64,000 bases of DNA from Tubulanus polymorphus (lineage: Eukaryota > Animalia > Nemertea). Positions 703 through 11,700 of this stretch are shown in pieces. The translations under genes and the position numbers were made by a program. The notes under the pieces were generated by a model, which worked only from the letters and a program-made list of their open reading frames with translations, ran no database searches and was not told where the DNA came from. The stretch's first letter is position 1, and every line of letters begins with the position of its first letter. The stretch lies in the NCBI RefSeq assembly GCF_964204645.1, contig NC_134034.1:5616914-5680913 (forward strand). Direction: 5' to 3'.

Positions 703-2062
703 GCAAAATATTATTGACATAGATGTAGAATGGCTTCCTGTGATTATATAATGACCTATATTTGAACGTCGAAATATTATATTGCATTGAATATCATTAG
801 AAGACGTATTGTAATAGTAAAGGATGTATGATTATATTAGAAGCGGCAGGCATAAATAGAAATGATAAGTAAATCGGATTATTCGGTTAAATGGCGGATG
901 TATACACGATTTGGAAGTCTGATATAAAAGTCAGACCCTGACGTGGGCATGCCGGTGGAATGACGAAGCTATCTACGATGTGTGTAGGGCCGGCGTGAAT
1001 TTCATCAGCGGCTACAAGCGGTCAATATGAAAATGTGTAAACATATAATTTCAATATTCAAACGTTTTAGAAAATATGTTTGATATTAGGAGTATGCAGG
1101 TTTCGTGAGATTAGCAATTTATAATAGCATAGCTGTCATATACGGCTCCGCGTCTTCTGATGGCATGTGTATTAGGCGACAATTCAATTCAATTCTTTAT
1201 TGATCCTTATTACATTGAAATTCCGGGATAAAATTCCCAAATTCAATAAATACAAATTCTAAAATAAATTAATACAACATACATGACACACGGGTAATTC
1301 ATACAGAACAACATAAGCATGTTATTTTAAATGACAATGTCTACTTCAACCCACCCAGACTCAAGACTCTAGTGACAGCCAAACCCGTGGCCCGGCCGGG
1401 CCGGCTGGCTAGGCCACACGATATGCTCGAAGTCATGATGAAGCAGACATCAGAAGAGCTCTTTCTTCAACCATGGAGGCTATGAAGTTGCAGACCAGCT
1501 TAGAGGCATAAGTAAATGAAGTCGGTCGCAAGTTCGCGATCAATTATTGAGAATTTTCAATAAAAAAATTTAAACTACTACTAGAGTCGAAGACCCGCTG
1601 TATCATCTACCCAATCGCCAGATCTCATCATTCCCCAAATTTCTTAAAACTTCGATTTCAAATTTGCAATTCCACATTAGCTTAGCCCAGAAATTCTACA
1701 TTTTTTTCGCAGGCGTCAAATAATTTTCTAAAATTAATTTTCTTGTTTACAACAGTGATTGACGAAACATTCATACATAATTTTCCCCAATATCTCCGAG
1801 ACCACAAAAACGAAAGCGCCGAATTGAAGGAAAAAGTAACAAACAAACGGAAGCAGAAAAAAGGAACACCCAAAAAAGCGTAGGTCATAGCCTTATTATT
1901 TGATGTTTTATTGTAAAAATGTTTTTTTCCTACAACCTATTTCTTCAGCGTGCCAAACATCCGTGTCCCGTTTGCAATATGCTTAAGACTCAAATGCCGC
2001 ATTACCAACAATACGGCGCATATTGATTTTCCCAGTCACCGATACGAGCGCGCTGTTCAAAG

Positions 2063-3372
2063 ATGGCTGCGCCCCGGTTACCCCGGTTACTCGCGTCGAG
2101 CGATCAGACCGATCAGTCTCCGTACAATTTACGTAACAAGAAGATCGACTTTAAACGCTTAGCTAATGGAGAAGCTGTTAGATATCAACGAGAACCACAA
2201 AGAAAGCACAGGGATATTCTAGAGGGGTGGTATATAATCAAGCGCCTGATAACATAGGCCTACAAGGAATCAACCGAGGAAGTAAGTTTCGTTAGACAAA
2301 ATTCATAAATCAACCTAACTAAACAACAACAGCCTGCCCTAGGAGCCTAAAAATGTACGTGTATCGCACCACTATCCTAATTAGGCTATCCCTCTAAAAG
2401 CTATTATATATCATTCCTACGAAAACAATACCGGTCAGCCTCTATCCATACTACACTAGGGTAGGTAGGCTTAGGCTACTTTTTACCGGGTCGAGTAGGC
2501 ATTCTGACAGAGTGTGAACCAGCTTCAGAAAAAATGTTAAATTTTGCGTTGCCGACTGTCTCAAAATGCCGGCAGAAAATGATTTTGAGATTTTGTACAT
2601 TGACAATGTAATAGGTCGGTAAGGTCGTCACGGGCCTAAATCTAGATGTCCTAAAAGCCATGTGTCTAAGACTAAGAGTCAGGTCAAGTCGGTACCTAGG
2701 CCTACTCATTTTAAATACTGTTTACAATGACCATGCATACCATTTTGACAAGAAGGGTAATTGACAATGTGACAGTCTTGAACGACTCTATTCAACCCCT
2801 CTTTTGACAAAGAGCGATAGCCTATTAGTTTCTTGTTTTTTTTTTAATTCATGCTTTGAAAAATCTTTAATTTTCAGTATCTCGTCCATTGGCAACACTA
2901 CAATCTTCACGAAAGTACATGGGAACCAAAGCACCACATACCAAAAGAAATTCTTGACAATTTTAAGAATCCTGCTGTGGACCAATCGAAAATATTAGAG
3001 GTAGCAGATGTCTTCATGTCGCATATACGCTCAAAATTATTGGAGGGCAACTTGACCATCACAATTCCATTTCCTCTGGATGTTTATCGTTCGGTGTTTT
3101 ATCATAAAGGTAACCCATGCGAAAAAGGATTTATTAGTCTCGAATTGGCTGATTTCGAGAATTTATCGTTGGATGTCAATTGGTATTATGTTTTGGACAA
3201 ACACGGGCAGGGAGTAAAACTAACATTTCCAGTGAAGATACGTCCAAGGCTTAGCTTCACTCGTCCAATATATTATGTCGAAGATGGAGAATTGAAACGT
3301 GGAAAGCAGCAACCTAAAGAAGTCATCGTATTCACTGCTGTGTCCCGTGCATGTGACAAATTAACTCTTTGA
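2063..3372 (+). pseudogene. Two-exon chromodomain protein gene (exons 2063-2281 and 2878-3372) with one in-frame stop at 2255-2257
   Basis: Phase-0 splice gag gaa|gtaagt ... ttttcag|tat gives WYIIKRLIT*AYKESTEE|YLVHWQHYNLHESTWEPKHHIPKEILDNF, a chromodomain, continuing in frame into ORF 2977-3372. Confidence 0.8.
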
Positions 3373-3498
3373 ATGACTGTTTTTACAATAATACTGTACT
3401 TTGACTGTTTTAGCTGTCTTTTTCTTTTTAGACATTCCGTTAGTTTTTATTTTTAAGTCTTTAAAGAACTAGCTGCCCATAGGAAATAATTATTTTAA

Positions 3499-3735
3499 CC
3501 CTTTCAGTGCATCTATACTGCAGTTCGGTGTATAAATTGCTGAAAGACTTAGCGAGTACACCGCAGCCCGACGTAATTTATATCTAATAAATGACTGCAG
3601 CAAACATAGTGAATATCAGTAACTAACGATACACTGCGTCGCGGTGTAGACACTCTACCCATTAGTGTTGAATTTTTGAAAAGTTTCAAATTATCTCCAG
3701 TACTTTCAGGTATTACTTATTCTGCACTGAAAGGG
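3499..3735. mobile_element. piggyBac-type MITE (237 bp)
   Basis: 13-bp perfect TIR ccctttcagtgca/tgcactgaaaggg; TTAA at 3495-3498 and 3736-3739; sits just upstream of the transposase ATG (3742). Confidence 0.9.
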
Positions 3736-3741
3736 TTAAAG

Positions 3742-6241
3742 ATGTCTGACAATTTAGTTCGTGGTAGTTACTGTGAAATTAAATTTCACCAGGCATTAGA
3801 GATTCAGTCATCAACTGTTGGATATGTCGATACAAAGCGGTGTATAAATAGTACACCTATCGCGTTTATATTGAAGTTAAGCAATGCATTTTTACGTGAA
3901 CTAAATGGGTTAAAAAGATCTCATGAAAATTTAAGTTATATTTCTATGGTTAACATTGGCTTGAAATATGCCAAAATTTCTGATTATGCATTTCGTGTTG
4001 AGAATAGATTGCACGATCTGTGCAGCAGTGTATGCTTGAAGTTTAGGAACGATAAGTTGTATAAAGGTGGAAAGAAATTTCAAAAATTTCAAGGTATAGT
4101 TCATTCTCTTGCAATTCATAGTGATGAAGTCTTAAACGTAGCACATATTAGTGAATATCTGTCAAATATAGTTTCAGAGAATCAGAACCTTGTGGAAAAG
4201 TTGTCATCACTTTCCTCAAAATTACAGGGTGTGCTGCAGAAAAATCAATATCTTGAAAACACACTAGAAAAAAAATGTGAAACTATTGACAAACTTGACA
4301 GAAATTTGAAAAACTATATACATTCAAACTATGTATCAAAAACCTAGCATTACCAATAGTGGTAAAGCGATTAAAGATTTGTCGAAGAGTCAAGTCAACA
4401 GGAAGTTGAAAATCCTCAAGGATGAAGCTGAGCGGGCCCTTTGGTTTGCAGAATCGTTTGGTTTGATTCCTGAAACTTTAACTTTTAGAGATTCTTGTGA
4501 TCAGAATCAGAAGTTTAGATTAGATTTTGATGAAGAAAGTAGTAGCAAGAAATCATTTGATAAATTATCAGATATGGATAAAAGCAGAATTCAGGATTTA
4601 TTGTACGTCTTAGATAGTTTATGTGTCAGTGATGCTGCGTATCATGAAATATCTATGCTTAACTCTGGGAGTTTACCATCTAAAAGTTTAATCGTACAAT
4701 GCCGCGAATCTCTCAACAAAATTTTCTCGATATATAGGGCTGAAGGGGGCATTCCTGGTGCATATGTTAGCTTGAAAGAGGCCATTTGCAGCAAAATTGA
4801 AAAAGAAAATTTGGATTCGAGTAAAAAGATTGAAATTCGCATTAGTGGCGATGGCGCACGTATGACAAAGACAAGTAATTTTATTACGGTGGCGTTTAAT
4901 TTCCTAAATGCAGGACTACCTGACAAGCCCATAGCACTTGGCATATTGAAAGGTTCTGAGTCGTATGAAAATTTCAAAACTGGTTTGAAACCCCTCATAG
5001 ATGAAATTAATGATTTAATATCATCAAAACAGATAGATATTAATGGGAAAACTTATGAGATTAATATACTTTTAGGTGGCGACTTGAAATTTATTCAAAT
5101 GTTTCTAGAATTAAAAGGTTCTACGGCAAAATATTCATGTCCGTGGTGTAAGGTATCACAAGATGATCGATATGATACTTCAAAAGCATGGGACTTCTAC
5201 CACAATGATTATATCGCAAGAACGCATGAAAACTTATGCGATGACGCCTTGAGATCACAATTTTGTGTGGAGAGATTACCTTTGTTTTCAGTGGATATGA
5301 AAAATCTAGTAGTTGATGAACTGCATTTACTTCTCAGGGTTGGAGATGTTCTCCTGAGAAATCTAATCTTCGATATCAAAGATGTAGACGATGAAGCATC
5401 ATTTGCCCGCGATTTAAGTGCATCAGTCATTGGTCAAAATTTGCATGGACTTGTAAGATTGATTCAAGAATGTGGTGTAGTGTTCCATATATGGGAGGTC
5501 CGTGATCCAGTCACATTGAAAGGAACTGGAAAATTAGAATGGAGCTCTTTGCAAGGGTCGGAATTTAAGAAATTGTTTAATCAACTTCCAGACAAACTAT
5601 CAACTTCTAAAATCATGCATGAAGATACAATGACTGATGTCCTTAAATTGTGGGCTGATTTTATTTCTCTGCATTCGTATATAACTAGTACCGGTGGCAC
5701 TGATATCCACAATCATCTGTCTTGTGAATTTATTTCTGTCGTTAGGCAGTAAACGCAAAGGGTATAAAAAGGCCAATGTGACGCCCTATATGCATGTACT
5801 CTTGTACCACGTTCCGTTTTTGATAAAAGAGCACGGGCCCATTAGTAGATACAGTGGTCAAAGTATTGAGAAATTAAATGACGTAGTTAAGTCAATTAAT
5901 ATGTCAAAATCAAACCGTAGTGATGGACCAAAAGATGCTCTTACAGTATTGAAGCGTATCGAGTATTTAAATAAGGAAGGTCACCAGAGAAAAAAGAGAA
6001 AATATTCTAAAGAAAATACGAAATTTTGGGACGAGGAAAAAAAAGCAGAGCTCAAAATAAAAAACGCAAAATTTTGGATGAAATCAACAGTGATACCCTT
6101 TTTAGGAAACAGGCTCCAATTCCTTCAACTGTAGAGGGTGTTAAGTCGGAGCTTCAGAAACTAGGTTTCAAAACAAATGCTAGAAACTATGACAGGCTCA
6201 AAAGTATTTTATTGATGCGGAGAGAATTGGCTGGTCAGTAG
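3742..6241 (+). pseudogene. RAG1/Transib-like (CMC-group) DDE transposase, three frameshifts, SAP-like C-terminus
   Basis: ORFs 3676-4347, 4331-5752, 5694-6134 and 6026-6241 overlap. Motifs in RAG1 order: ISGDG, GGDLK, CPWC, DELH, TPYMH..LYHVP, SGQSIEKLN. Tail TVEGVKSELQKLGFKT..RLKSIL is SAP-like. Confidence 0.85.
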
Positions 6242-6247
6242 ACCTCG

Positions 6248-6366
6248 GGGGGCCAGTTTTATAAACTTGTTTTAATTAACTTTAACCCAGGGGCTAACTG
6301 AAGTTCGTTTTCAATTGAGTTAACCCCTGGGTTAAAGCTAATATCAGTCTATAAAACCGGAGCCTG
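6248..6366. mobile_element. Short palindromic MITE; related copy at ~62362-62495
   Basis: Imperfect inverted halves (ggccagttttataaac / gtctataaaaccggagcc; tttaacccagggg / cccctgggttaaa). Confidence 0.6.
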
Positions 6367-7147
6367 ATGTAGTTTTTGTTGGTGATATTCCCAGTGAATT
6401 ATCTACATATATATATTGGAGCCTGTTTCCTAAATAGGGTATCACTGTTGATATATATAAAGCACCTATTATCCAATGCCTATGTGGTGTTATTGGTGTA
6501 TTTACACTTCATACCGTCCTAAGTACTTTGAAATGTGCAATGTAAATGTGTTCCGAATTTGTTTTTGTTAGTCTTTTTTATATATGTTATTACAGCATTG
6601 ATTTTCGTAATAAAGAATAGATTGAAAAATCTTTTAATAGATCTCAGTTTTTTATACAGTTGTCCGCAGAAAGGGATCTTTTTCTCGTTTTCTTTTCGCT
6701 GAAAAATTGGTTCTCACGGCTGAAAGCTGCTGTCGTCTTCATTCAGGATCTTTAAAAATTCAATCAAGGATACTTATCAAGGATTATCAATCAAGGCACC
6801 GCATGTCCCACCCATAGTAGCTTCAAAGATTGTTCTTAATTGTTATGGACGTACAGTAGACTCCCTCAAGTTGGATCTTTTGCCCGGGAATGTAAAAATG
6901 TGTCGACGGTGATATCCGCCGAGTTGGTACGATCCTTAAATTGTTTGTCACTAAAAAAAATATTTCAATAATCGAGCGGAGTAAACCGCAGTTTACACAT
7001 CCATGATACCCGGGATCCCGCCCGCTGTTTTGTTTTGGCTTCGCCCCGAGCCAAGGTAGCCAGAGAGCTGGTATTATGCAATAACCTGGAACAAGATTTA
7101 GAAATACAAAAAAAAGTGATAATAAATTTGGGTCAGAAGACAAGTAC

Positions 7148-7229
7148 ACGTAATGGCACAGTGGGTAGAGCGATTGGTTTCAAAGCGGGAGGTTAGTAGT
7201 TCGCGTCCGCATCGCGCTCTGATTTTTTT
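7148..7229 (+). ncRNA. Degenerate tRNA-like / Pol III promoter sequence
   Basis: A-box TGGCACAGTGG, B-box-like GTTCGCGTCC at tRNA spacing, followed by a T7 run; the cloverleaf stems pair poorly. Confidence 0.45.
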
Positions 7230-7639
7230 CTAAATTTTTCAGGGTAAAAGTGAAGGGAACTTTTTTAAAGGCACCTGCTTGTGTTTAGTACCACAGAGTA
7301 GGATTTTTCATATACTTGTACTCGTCGAAAACTTTATTTCTGTATTGATTTTCTAATTTAGCCTTGCATCTCGTGAAAACAACCCGACCACGCTTGCGCG
7401 TTACGCAATAGGCACTTTTGAACAAGATCCAAATTAAAAATTGTTTTCAAAAAGTGAAGGGATTAAATATTCTGGCAACTTAATGATATTTTTGCAGCAT
7501 ATAACTGAAGGTGTCTGGTAAATGATGTCGAAAACCGTTTATCAAAAGGAACAAACAGGAATCTAGCACAGCGATTTGAAGTTCGTTGGTCTATAGAAAC
7601 TCAGTCAGCCGTCGACTCGAGCGCGGCCTATTGTTGCGC

Positions 7640-8770
7640 GCATGAGCAGAGGTCGATGCGCCGCATTGTTGGTAATGGGAACATCTTCGAACGATGCATG
7701 AGTGGACAAGAGAAAGAGAGAGAGAGATCGAGGAACTGGGAACGCTTGAACAAAGAATCGACCGGGACCGCACCGAACATGCGCGGTAAAGTATGCGCGG
7801 TAAACGTCGGCAAATGAAAGAATGTTCTAAATGTGGCTACTATTTCAGAAAAATGCCCGCACATACACGCTGCCAGGAAGGTAATAGCACCTTTCTATGA
7901 TGAATTGGTTAACTGATATGTTATGTTGAAATATGATGTTTTTCCCTTTCGTTCACAGCTGACAAAAATGAAATCGATGAAGACGTTTCATTAGAAACAA
8001 CACATAAAGAAAACAATGAAATCGGCGAAACCGCTAGTTCTGTTTCACCAGCTAACACAGATTTAGAATCCAGCGACGAAGCTTCTGACGAGGACAGTTC
8101 TACTTCCAGTTCAGAATCGGATGAAATTGGGAAACCCCAAGGGTAAGTCCTACACATTTTGGCTCATGTCTTATATGAGCTTCAAAATGTATTCCCTATG
8201 TTCTTGCAAAATTCCGAAAAGAGTATTACAAGTGGCTTTTGCAAGCACATGATGAACGAACCGCCGCTGGTTATGTCAGGGATTCCATGAATCCTCTACG
8301 CTTCTGTAATGGGATGCTGACAGCCAAACGTGTGAATGAATGGTTTTTTTAGCAAAACATGACAAAACAGTCAGGTTCTATCAAGGCTTACATTCACACA
8401 CTAAAGAACCGGCTAATTGAATTCATCAAAGATGTGAGTATTATCACAATGAACATTTCTGTCATTAGACTGTATATATTAATAATTTTGATTTTCAGCA
8501 CGGTGTTAAAGAGTGCAAATGCACTAATCGTGAACTGAAAAGCGTGCTTAGGAAGCTTGAACGGCTCCGAACTCTTACTGAAAAAGCAATCAAAATAAGA
8601 ATAACAGAAATTCACGAAAAGCAGAAAAGTGAGTCATAACTTTCACCGTATATCTACGTATCGACCTTTTCTCGTTTCATGAAGAGTGTCTTCTCAAAAA
8701 AGACGACGTCAAAGCTATTCCTGTAGGCAAAGAAGCCAAAACAGCTGTCAAAATCATCAGAGATGATCAC
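7640..8770 (+). pseudogene. 5' exons of a multi-exon gene: zinc fingers, acidic linker, tyrosine-recombinase-like core-binding helices
   Basis: Exons ~7640-7880, 7959-8142, ~8180-8433, 8499-8628 and ~8680-8770, mostly with GT/AG ends. Peptides WEHLRTMH, CSKCGYYFRKMPAH, KFRKEYYKWLLQAHDERTAAGYVRD and SGSIKAYIHTLK; stops and frameshifts present. Confidence 0.5.
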
Positions 8771-11700
8771 CAGGAATCCGCGCTGGTGAGGGGATATGAG
8801 ATCCTCCGTCTTCAGATGTTGCATTATTCTATTCCTCACAATTTTTTCTAATAGTTTACAGACAACGCTAGTGAGACTAATTGGTCCGTAATTTGATGGA
8901 TGGTGTTTATCACCTTTATTTTTGAAGATTGCTGTAATTTGTGCCAACTTCCAGTCACCAGGGATCATGCCATTTTGCAGGGATAAGTTGAAAATAATAG
9001 ATAGTGGTAGTGATATAACTCCAGACAGCTCTTTTAAGACCCGGGGTGTATATCATCAGGTCCTGCAGATTTGTTTGCTTTTAGTTCATTCAGTAGTTTT
9101 TCTACTTCAAGTTTGCTAGTGGTTACTGTTTGGAGGTGGCTTGCGACATTCTTGTTCGGTAAGCACGGCACATCGGTGAGGTCTTCATTAGTAAATACAC
9201 TCGTGAAGTACTGGTTCAGCATATTAGCTTTCTCGTTATCAGATTCAGCACTGATACCTGATGAGTCATCAATGAACTGAGGATTACCTGAAGTTAGTTT
9301 AGTTTTGCCGCGTGCATACTGCCAAAAGCTCTTTGGATTAGTTTTTACGTTCTCGGCTATCCTTTTCTCATACGCACGGATAGCTCTTCTTATTGCTTTC
9401 TTAGACTCATTCCTGTATTTTATGTATTCATCATGATCATTATCACTTTTAGTGTTCAAATATTTCCTCCAGGCAGCACGCTTTTTTTTAACTTGTGACA
9501 AGGTATTTTGATCCATCCAGAGTGGTTTGCGTTTGTTACCACCCCGAGTGTTGTGTTTAGGGATACACTTATCAATTTCGGTCTCAAATACTGTTCTAAA
9601 AGTTGACCAGGTTGTGTTTACAATTTATCTTTCAATATCTGTTCCCAATCCTTAGACATTTCAGCCCTTAACTTAAAATAATCTCCTCGATTATAATTTC
9701 TTTCTCCGTTATAACCTTATTGGTGACTGTCGTAACATCCCAATTAAACTTGATGGTTATATGATCGCTACTTCCAAGAGGGGATAAATATCTCAGATCA
9801 CTTATGTCTTCTTCCTGTTGTGTAAGTACAAGGTCCAATATATTTGCTATTTGACCTGGTCTGTATCTAGTGCTTGTTGTCACATGTTGATGTAAATACA
9901 GGTCAGTACATGTTTCCAGGAGGTTAATCGCATGTTCATTTCTTGTACATGATCGTGATGACCAATTAATTGTAGGGTAGTTAAAATCGCCTACCACTAA
10001 CGCATTTTCCTGTTAGAAACCATTTCTTTCAGTAGTGAGACTAGCATTATTTACATCACAACTGTTAGGGCTACGATAAACACATCCAAAACGGTACTTT
10101 GTATTTCGAGTACCGGTATTTAGCTCGATCCATAATGATTTTGAAAACTTCGTGACTGGATGGATTTGAACACAGTTTAACTCATTTTCGTGTATAAAAT
10201 GATACCTCTTCCTTTATCAGTTAGGTTGCTACAGATATCATAACCATGTATTTTGACTATCGTCATAAATGCCTCTGCATCAGGTATTGATGTTTTAGGT
10301 AGGACTTCTGTCAGAGCAATTATATCGGGGTCGCATCCAAAGACGAGTTGTTTCAATTCATCAATTTTGTTTCTTAGACTATCGACATTAGCTTAGCATA
10401 GATGCACTTGAGTTTGTTCACATAGTTGGTATTTTCTCTACTGCAAGAACTGTTGTTAATATTGGGATTTTTTATCGTTACACCTTGGTAAGATTTTTCC
10501 ATATTCGTATCAATTGTTGATTTTGTCCTTTTTTTCTGATTACATAATTGTGGATTTTTACTTTGATTCAGACTTGGATCCTTAATCTTAACTCCGAAAG
10601 GACTGGACTTTTATTATTTTTCTGCCTCGAATCTTTGGACCAGTTTCTCCAAGAGCAGTGCGTTTTTCCATATCAGCTTTTAGGCTTTGAAATTCTTGAC
10701 GCTGACTTTTTGTTCTATATACTGAAATTTGTATGCCCTCAAGTGATGATTCTACATTTCTTCTGATACCTTGATAGCAGTTCATTACATTTTCTTTATC
10801 TAAGTTACTAGCAAGAATAATTTAAACCGGTCTGCACTTATCATGTATACCTTTACCTAATCTGATGACAGCTTTGGGCCTCTCAATTCCTACGTGTAAT
10901 GTCTGAGAACATAATCTGTCAAAGCTGTCCCAGTCATAGCCGATCTAGCAGATGGGTTTGCCGCATTTGATTCTACCATGCCATAAACAATTATATTATT
11001 TCTTCTACTCTCAGTTTCCCACACATCTTCTCTAATTTCGTCAATCTGATTAGAAATTTTTTCAACCATTTTATCGGAACTGTATTGGTTTTGCATTGCT
11101 TGGTGAATTCGTTCATCTATATCATTCAGGTCTAGTGTATCAACCTTTTCATTTATCAGCTTGATTTCATCATTTAGCTTCGTAATTTCCTCCTTTTCAG
11201 CATTTTTATCGAAAGCAGATAACAAGTCACAGAATAGCCTATTATTGTTATCCTTGATACTTTCTACAGTTGTTGCCAACATATCCGCAAACATGTCATG
11301 CATTTGACCAATGGTCTCAGAAACATTGACATTTTCGTTTGTAACTTTACAGTCAGGGCAATGTACCACTGAATTTATGTTGCCCTCAAAAGTTTCAGTT
11401 GATACCACCGCACAGCCATGACATATTGTTGATTTACATTGCTGACATATCAACCTTTTTGCAGTTCGAATCTCCTTGTTACATACTGGGCATGTAGGCC
11501 TACAGGTTACAGGCATGTAGGCCACAGCCTTTCTCTTAGGTCGTTTTTGGCTTCTTTGCTCCAGGGGCTTCTCTTCATCATTGGCGACTGGACCTTGTCC
11601 TTCTTGGGCTGCGTTTGTTCGAATAAGTCTCGTCACTAAACCTGGATAGGATTGTGATGCTGTTCTGAACTCATCTGTCCCATCGATATACGATGAATCA

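Follow-up and report, generated by a model that had tools for sequence, protein, structure and literature searches.

A RAG1-fold transposase and a chromodomain protein encoded by one recently mobile DNA transposon of the nemertean Tubulanus polymorphus

In a 64,000-nucleotide stretch of the Tubulanus polymorphus genome (hereafter the window, on contig C10 of a 268 Mb assembly; coordinates are window positions), a frameshifted gene resembling RAG1-type transposases lies just downstream of a two-exon gene for a chromodomain protein. This arrangement raises the question of whether both genes belong to a single mobile element and, if so, whether the chromodomain protein might do for its transposase what the chromatin reader RAG2 does for RAG1; the origin of RAG1's dependence on RAG2 is an open question in the origins of adaptive immunity. 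We found that the genes belong to a cut-and-paste DNA transposon, one copy of which spans window 2000-7677, and that it encodes two proteins, a transposase and what we call its partner. Its parts are as follows.

2000-7677, + strand: the entire 5,678-bp transposon, here decayed and inserted heterozygously
2000-2021, + strand: left terminal inverted repeat (TIR), 22 bp, CATTACCAACAATACGGCGCAT; one mismatch to the right TIR
2063-2281, + strand: partner exon 1, N-terminal tail and first chromodomain strand (WYIIK); six extra bases at 2255-2260 give a TAG stop
2282-2877, + strand: partner intron, GTAAGT...TTTTCAG, phase 0, read from the sequence as GT..AG
2878-3372, + strand: partner exon 2, rest of the chromodomain (YLVHWQHY...TWEP; Pfam Chromo) and an orphan alpha/beta domain of ~130 aa
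3742-6241, + strand: transposase gene in four frame pieces; intact form 839 aa
7656-7677, - strand: right TIR, 22 bp, inverted match of the left TIR

The ends of the element were defined by aligning copies, as a first-pass annotation of the locus had suggested. Both are 22-bp inverted repeats (CATTACCAACAATRCGGCGCAT) one mismatch apart; the TIR begins CATTACC, and the termini read 5'-CA..TG-3' (outermost CAT..ATG). The window element and a second copy on contig C1 (G000:C1:12221771-12227462) are 99.07% identical end to end, and similarity stops exactly at both termini. Genome-wide, the full-length TIR free of mismatches occurs only at these two copies. A version of the terminus with three mismatches was found at two more sites, both on C1, one of which (L041) is a miniature inverted-repeat transposable element (MITE) of ~494 bp with the same outermost bases at both ends.

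The C1 copy is intact, with both genes open: it carries an uninterrupted 839-aa transposase (L027:2712-5228:-) together with open partner exons. The window copy is dead: its partner gene is interrupted by an in-frame stop and its transposase by three frameshifts. The stop, overlooked in the first-pass annotation, comes from the six extra bases in exon 1, which are missing from the C1 copy (intact exon 1, L027:6688-6900:-) and from 23 of 28 reads of run X4, taken from another individual. The transposase starts with an ATG at 3742 and is spread over frame pieces 3676-4347, 4331-5752, 5694-6134 and 6026-6241; read mapping and the intact copy place the frameshifts at +4 bp near 4312-4315, -23 bp after 5721 and -1 bp after 6036. 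At three of the four damage sites (the partner stop and the three frameshifts), most X4 reads are unbroken.

Sequencing reads caught the element in more than one state. Contigs of runs X1-X3 join position 1998 directly to 7678, which represents an empty allele without either gene; in X1 its depth is 20 and that of the filled junction 21, and the insertion is therefore heterozygous. In raw reads of X4, both ends are flanked by a mixture of different sequences (35 reads for one end, 21 for the second), and internal-deletion derivatives (2206->6949 and 2167->6957) occur as well. Given the empty allele, the other insertion sites and these derivatives, the element has moved recently in T. polymorphus. 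Comparing empty and filled alleles, at most one base (a G, the only base shared at the 1998/7678 join) is duplicated, so that the target-site duplication (TSD) is 0-1 bp at this one pair, and not the 5 bp of Transib and RAG. The C1 copy is flanked by T..A with no duplication, and the MITE L041 likewise shows no longer one. A TSD hidden within the CAT/ATG termini (target CATG or AT) was ruled out, as the empty allele lacks the entire CATTACC..GGTAATG unit. A host gene pair, or domesticated genes, was ruled out, since the sequence is bounded by TIRs, missing from the empty allele and polymorphic in its insertion sites.

We then asked how tightly the two genes are associated. They lie on the same strand, separated by a 369-bp spacer (3373-3741) of which 247 bp are a nested MITE, leaving ~125 bp without it; the first-pass annotation had given about 370 and 130 bp. 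Within this genome, all ten matches to partner exon 2 adjoin a transposase of one of two close subfamilies (43-100% identical), always upstream and on the same strand, and in other assemblies both genes are present at all six loci examined. Gene order is tandem in L044 (ENA), L045 (Mytilus galloprovincialis) and L052 (M. trossulus), and convergent, tail to tail, in L046 and L047 (both ENA) and L053 (the octocoral Dendronephthya gigantea). Pairwise identities among partners follow those among transposases (Mantel r 0.86, exact p 0.002, 7 pairs). The pair is inherited together in the genomes of nemerteans, bivalves and an octocoral, and its two proteins diverge in step. Between the two mussels (L045 vs L052) both proteins are 99-100% identical, which suggests a very recent shared or transferred element. 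This is a genuine two-gene transposon: both genes lie between the TIRs, neither is present in the empty allele, and they stay linked across phyla. The first-pass annotation had proposed just that, and had named unlinked homologues in other copies or genomes as the observation that would overturn it; linkage was found at all ten own-genome matches and all six loci elsewhere.

The partner is a ~235-aa protein composed of an HP1-like chromodomain and the orphan alpha/beta domain. Exon 1 ends GAA|GTAAGT and exon 2 begins at 2878 after TTTTCAG, and the intron position is the same in Mytilus (NCBI-annotated M. trossulus P0164 vs L045/L052) and in L044. The contigs of X2 and X3 leave exon 2 uncovered and contain no splice joint. 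Exon 2 alone passes the Pfam Chromo model (PF00385; score 28.2 bits, E 1.8e-6, threshold 25.1 bits), and full-length homologues score 30-59 bits (up to 58.9). By motif reading, the aromatic cage comprises the Y of WYIIK and the W and Y of YLVHWQHY, positions that are aromatic in every homologue read (L044-L047, P0164, P0174 and P0185). Some homologues are automatically annotated as CBX1 or HP1-like; the chromoshadow domain of HP1/CBX proteins is absent, Pfam showing Chromo alone and the C-terminal fold being different. Exon 2 of the intact copy, modelled with AF2 on an alignment of 53 natural homologues (62 partner homologues in the alignment query), reached a pLDDT (predicted local distance difference test) of 88.7. 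For the C-terminal domain there was no Pfam model, Foldseek against the PDB returned only E >= 0.15, the best VIA Z score was 4.4, not above noise, and the ESM Atlas matched it only to its own cnidarian family. A word-based homologue search with the window exon 2 alone gave nothing, and no RAG2-like gene is present in the element. The first-pass description of this gene was thus borne out: two exons upstream on the same strand, the Y, W and Y of the cage kept, and ~130 aa of no recognised kind, with a splice predicted by homology.

The transposase consists of an N-terminal alpha/beta domain and coiled coil, a RAG1-fold DDE core and a SAP-like tail. All motifs named in the first-pass annotation were found in two open reading frames (ORFs), SGDG, GGDLK, CPWC and DELH in 4331-5752, and YMHVLLYHVP and QSIEKLN in 5694-6134. 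An exhaustive HMMER search at E <= 0.001 yielded 1,888 representative proteins. Across the alignment built from 38 full-length members, D369, D446, C465, C468 and H527 are invariant and H691, H696 and E716 nearly so (spacings D-19-C, C-2-C, H-4-H and H-19-E), and the DDE triad (D369, D446, E716) sits on an RNase H-like core. Against the PDB, the profile of this alignment matches significantly only RAG1 proteins (zebrafish RAG1 at 3e-9, amphioxus RAG1L at 4.5e-8), HzTransib being absent from the 60 best matches shown. With the AF2 model (pLDDT 85), the Foldseek comparison advocated in the first-pass annotation gave 49 top matches that are all RAG1, HzTransib or BbRAGL (E 4e-15 to 4e-8), headed by RAG1 at 4e-15 over ~590 columns and followed by the P-element transposase at 1e-4. 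These profile and structure matches establish the RAG1/Transib fold for the transposase; sequence identity in the structural alignments to RAG1 is 14-15%. Single pieces searched against the PDB by phmmer gave no significant match (RAG1 top at E ~0.5).

The residue correspondence to mouse RAG1 that had been drawn up beforehand survives in most of its positions. In the alignment, RAG1 D708 is matched by the second D, C727/C730 by the CxxC, H937/H942 by the two His and E962 by the E. The first D (D369) is assigned from fold and invariance only, as it is not aligned to RAG1 D600 by sequence. The SAP-like tail noted in the same annotation is likewise seen in 7 of the 38 family members, but under the Pfam threshold (best E 7.5e-4).

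A shared fold does not settle which lineage the transposase belongs to. The C(2)C and H(3-4)H motifs are common to the whole CACTA-Mirage-Chapaev-Transib (CMC-Transib) clade (PMC12730594), and C(2)C, LH and H(4)H have been named Chapaev hallmarks (PMC4079192); the motifs are therefore not specific to RAG1 or Transib. Here the Chapaev set is represented by CPWC, DELH and YMHVLLYH (C465, C468 and H527 invariant, H691 and H696 nearly), and the wider clade's zinc ligands are conserved too, C465/C468 and H691/H696 aligning with their RAG1 counterparts. DUF1280 has been equated with Chapaev transposases (PMC3985635). Compared with a DUF1280-positive sister family of the same genome, the present family scores 99.7% in hhalign (E 9e-26) and a pairwise E of 7e-9; RAG1 is reached at a pairwise E of ~0.5 and a profile E of 3e-9. 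The nearest ESM Atlas cluster of the transposase also carries DUF1280. The broken window pieces matched little in Pfam, DUF1280 at E 0.018 (15.1 bits, under the cut-off of 25) being their sole result; the intact copy gave RAG1 at E 0.019, no member of set A1 passes DUF1280, and no Pfam model covers the transposase. The hhalign score and the Atlas cluster therefore point to a Chapaev-related lineage by sequence. As judged by pairwise, profile and hhalign scores, the transposase lies far closer in sequence to the DUF1280 family of Chapaev type than it does to RAG1 or Transib, and the E values against the DUF1280 family do not group it with Transib and RAG1 over other CMC lineages. What had been called RAG1/Transib-like is so in fold and in catalytic and zinc motifs, but these motifs are clade-wide, the sequence lies nearer to Chapaev-type DUF1280 and the 5-bp TSD is missing.

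Neither does the element conform to the published features of Chapaev, namely CAC..GTG ends, a TSD of 3-4 bp (TWA) and an N-terminal Chapa zinc finger (PMC4079192, PMC4411706). Its ends are CAT..ATG and its TSD 0-1 bp, and the first ~230 residues of the 38-member alignment hold no conserved Cys or His, the model showing there an alpha/beta region and a long coiled coil. The CA..TG termini are those of the clade; for the TSD, where the clade has 2-5 bp, the single testable pair shows 0-1 bp, with no repeat visible at two other insertions. An RSS-like (recombination signal sequence) heptamer, CACAATG or CACAGTG, is absent from the start of the TIR.

The sister family offers a second view of the same enzymes. 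It is a single-gene, multi-copy family with open frames of 844-923 aa (L048:4054-6648 on G000:C3, L049, L050 and L051) and many more copies, several of them on C12:6.6-10.8 Mb; it passes Pfam DUF1280 at 1.6e-22 and accounts for the distant transposase matches in the genome (25-29% identity). On a coiled-coil insertion inside its catalytic core, matching residues ~556-593 of the present transposase, it bears a PHD-like C4HC3 finger, and no partner gene was seen at L048-L051. This built-in finger suggests that such enzymes acquire reader modules repeatedly. The present family and this one are alike in their homologous core, in sharing a genome and in being multi-copy with long open frames; they differ in that the sister family has one gene, with the reader-type domain within the transposase itself.

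There is also a second subfamily of the two-gene element, its transposase ~43-50% identical, with copies on C12, C2 and C20. These are truncated or have flanks in common, and the search for a TIR in them gave none. Four of them (L028-L031, C12:9.0-11.2 Mb) lie with many PHD-family copies in the last 2.5 Mb of C12. Several C12 copies share flanking sequence, so the end of C12 looks like a repeat-rich region of segmental duplication, and their grouping is no evidence of insertion preference.

Other repeats are nested in the element or lie near it.

3494-3740, no strand assigned: nested MITE, 247 bp, piggyBac type, with perfect 18-bp inverted ends, TTAA/CCC; a peak in read depth
6275-6342, no strand assigned: hairpin repeat with 28-nt arms directly after the transposase stop, within a high-copy repeat; depth peak at 6250-6449

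The MITE sits between the two genes and stops one base before the transposase ATG; the C1 copy carries it too, and a first look through the genome gave at least 874 matches to the MITE family. With its very high read depth, about 890 in X1, the hairpin stretch (6253-6360) is presumably one more small high-copy repeat that has come to lie within the transposon. The noncoding 3' part, 1.4 kb long, holds a 108-aa ORF on the - strand (6823-7149) that is open in the C1 copy as well (L027:1800-2126); this ORF is featureless and probably due to chance. About 1 kb downstream of the element, an ORF on the - strand (8654-8968) is reverse-transcriptase-like, a fragment of a non-LTR (long terminal repeat) retrotransposon.

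What might the partner do? The reading we prefer, to which we give a probability of roughly 70%, is that of a two-protein transposon whose partner tethers or licenses a RAG1-fold transposase on marked chromatin. Transposase dimers would bind the 22-bp TIRs, and the D369-D446-E716 site would cleave at the CA/TG termini. The orphan domain would dock the partner onto the transposase, while the chromodomain would recognise methyl-lysine on histones, with H3K9me- or H3K27me-type marks as the likeliest target. In this way the partner could hold or license the transposase on marked chromatin, comparably to the PHD finger of RAG2, which reads H3K4me3, for RAG1, and to chromovirus integrases. Integration would proceed with almost no stagger, leaving a target duplication of 0-1 bp.

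Several points weigh against this reading. A chromatin-targeting role is proposed by analogy, and so are the contact between partner and transposase and the binding of a histone mark. The partner splice at 2281/2878 is a prediction from homology. The length of the target duplication hangs on one empty/filled pair (1 bp, a G; none at the C1 copy), and two deep clades contribute most of the Mantel signal. The second-subfamily copies lie inside larger duplicated blocks of C12, so that their clustering says nothing about targeting. Finally, the family may already be catalogued in Repbase or Dfam.

This last point is the rival that survives best: the structure would be real, but would be a two-ORF family of the Chapaev/Transib group already held in one of those databases. 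The transposase is clearly in the Chapaev/DUF1280 neighbourhood (PMC3985635), its relatives form a large family, and Repbase holds many families undescribed in print. Yet Pfam has no model for the transposase or for the partner's C-terminal domain, the element departs from Chapaev in its termini, its TSD and its lack of a Chapa finger (PMC4079192, PMC4411706), and nothing of the kind turned up in full-text searches on chromodomains with Transib, Chapaev or RAG1-like transposons. Within the full-text literature, Repbase and Dfam lying outside this scope, we found no published chromodomain partner in Transib, Chapaev or RAG-like elements, and on balance we think prior cataloguing unlikely.

A slightly weaker contender is that the partner manages the element's own chromatin, either competing with host HP1 or Polycomb readers to permit expression or recruiting silencing that limits copy number. 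The HP1-like chromodomain, with the CBX1/HP1-like labels of some homologues, suits this idea, and conserved linkage and co-divergence fit any essential accessory role. A pure anti-silencing factor, however, need not co-diverge with the transposase, nor would it need a private orphan domain found only in the partner family. We regard such a role as improbable compared with the tethering or licensing of the transposase. That the chromodomain gene is a captured host passenger without a role in transposition is very improbable indeed: DNA transposons do capture host fragments and the C-terminal domain has no known function, but a passenger would not be kept in conserved linkage and with correlated identities, its open frame and cage residues retained where transposases are only 30-40% identical, in three phyla and two gene orders, with no stand-alone host copy seen and all own-genome matches next to a transposase.

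If tethering or licensing of the transposase by the partner is correct, the pairing could be a separately evolved counterpart of RAG1-RAG2, the pair to which our antibody genes are owed. Three routes to a reader could then be recognised: a separate chromodomain subunit with a private docking fold, a PHD finger in the catalytic core (the sister family) and the PHD finger of RAG2. From this we put forward, tentatively and with more doubt than confidence, that RAG1-fold transposases have repeatedly and independently been coupled to histone-mark readers, that mark reading is a recurrent need of this enzyme class and not a vertebrate innovation, and that in the present lineage strand-transfer geometry changed to near-zero target duplication. 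The element would be a natural and apparently still mobile relative, in which a RAG1-fold transposase is tied to a different, predicted histone-reader subunit from cnidarians to molluscs and nemerteans. It provides a second, independent case in which to study how a transposase is coupled to a chromatin reader, and the intact copy makes a direct test possible of whether the partner licenses or steers transposition. The orphan domain and the near-absent target duplication fall outside published descriptions of Chapaev or Transib.

The element can be set against four known systems. With Chapaev and Chapaev3 (CMC) it shares a DDE core with C(2)C, LH and H(4)H, homology to the DUF1280 family and animal hosts; unlike them, it has CAT..ATG ends, a 0-1 bp TSD, no Chapa finger and a second gene, that of the chromodomain protein. 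Transib (HzTransib) has the same fold (Foldseek E 5e-11 to 4e-8) and CA..TG termini, but is a single gene with a 5-bp TSD, whereas the present transposase adds an N-terminal coiled coil and a SAP-like tail. Chromoviruses (Ty3/gypsy LTR elements) are also mobile elements that use a chromodomain, which, according to work attributed to Gao and colleagues in 2008, reportedly directs integration to heterochromatin; they belong to a different element class, and their chromodomain is fused to the integrase instead of being encoded by a separate gene.

The remaining comparison is with RAG1-RAG2, ProtoRAG and TransibSU. These, like the present element, have a RAG1-fold transposase with aligned catalytic and zinc residues and an obligately linked second gene whose product carries a domain of the histone-mark-reader type; one clade of the present family even has the convergent gene order of RAG1 and RAG2. 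They differ in that their partner is a kelch propeller with a PHD finger, as opposed to ~235 aa of chromodomain and orphan domain, and in that the TIRs described here have no RSS-like heptamer or nonamer, the 5-bp TSD is absent and identity to RAG1 is 14-15%.

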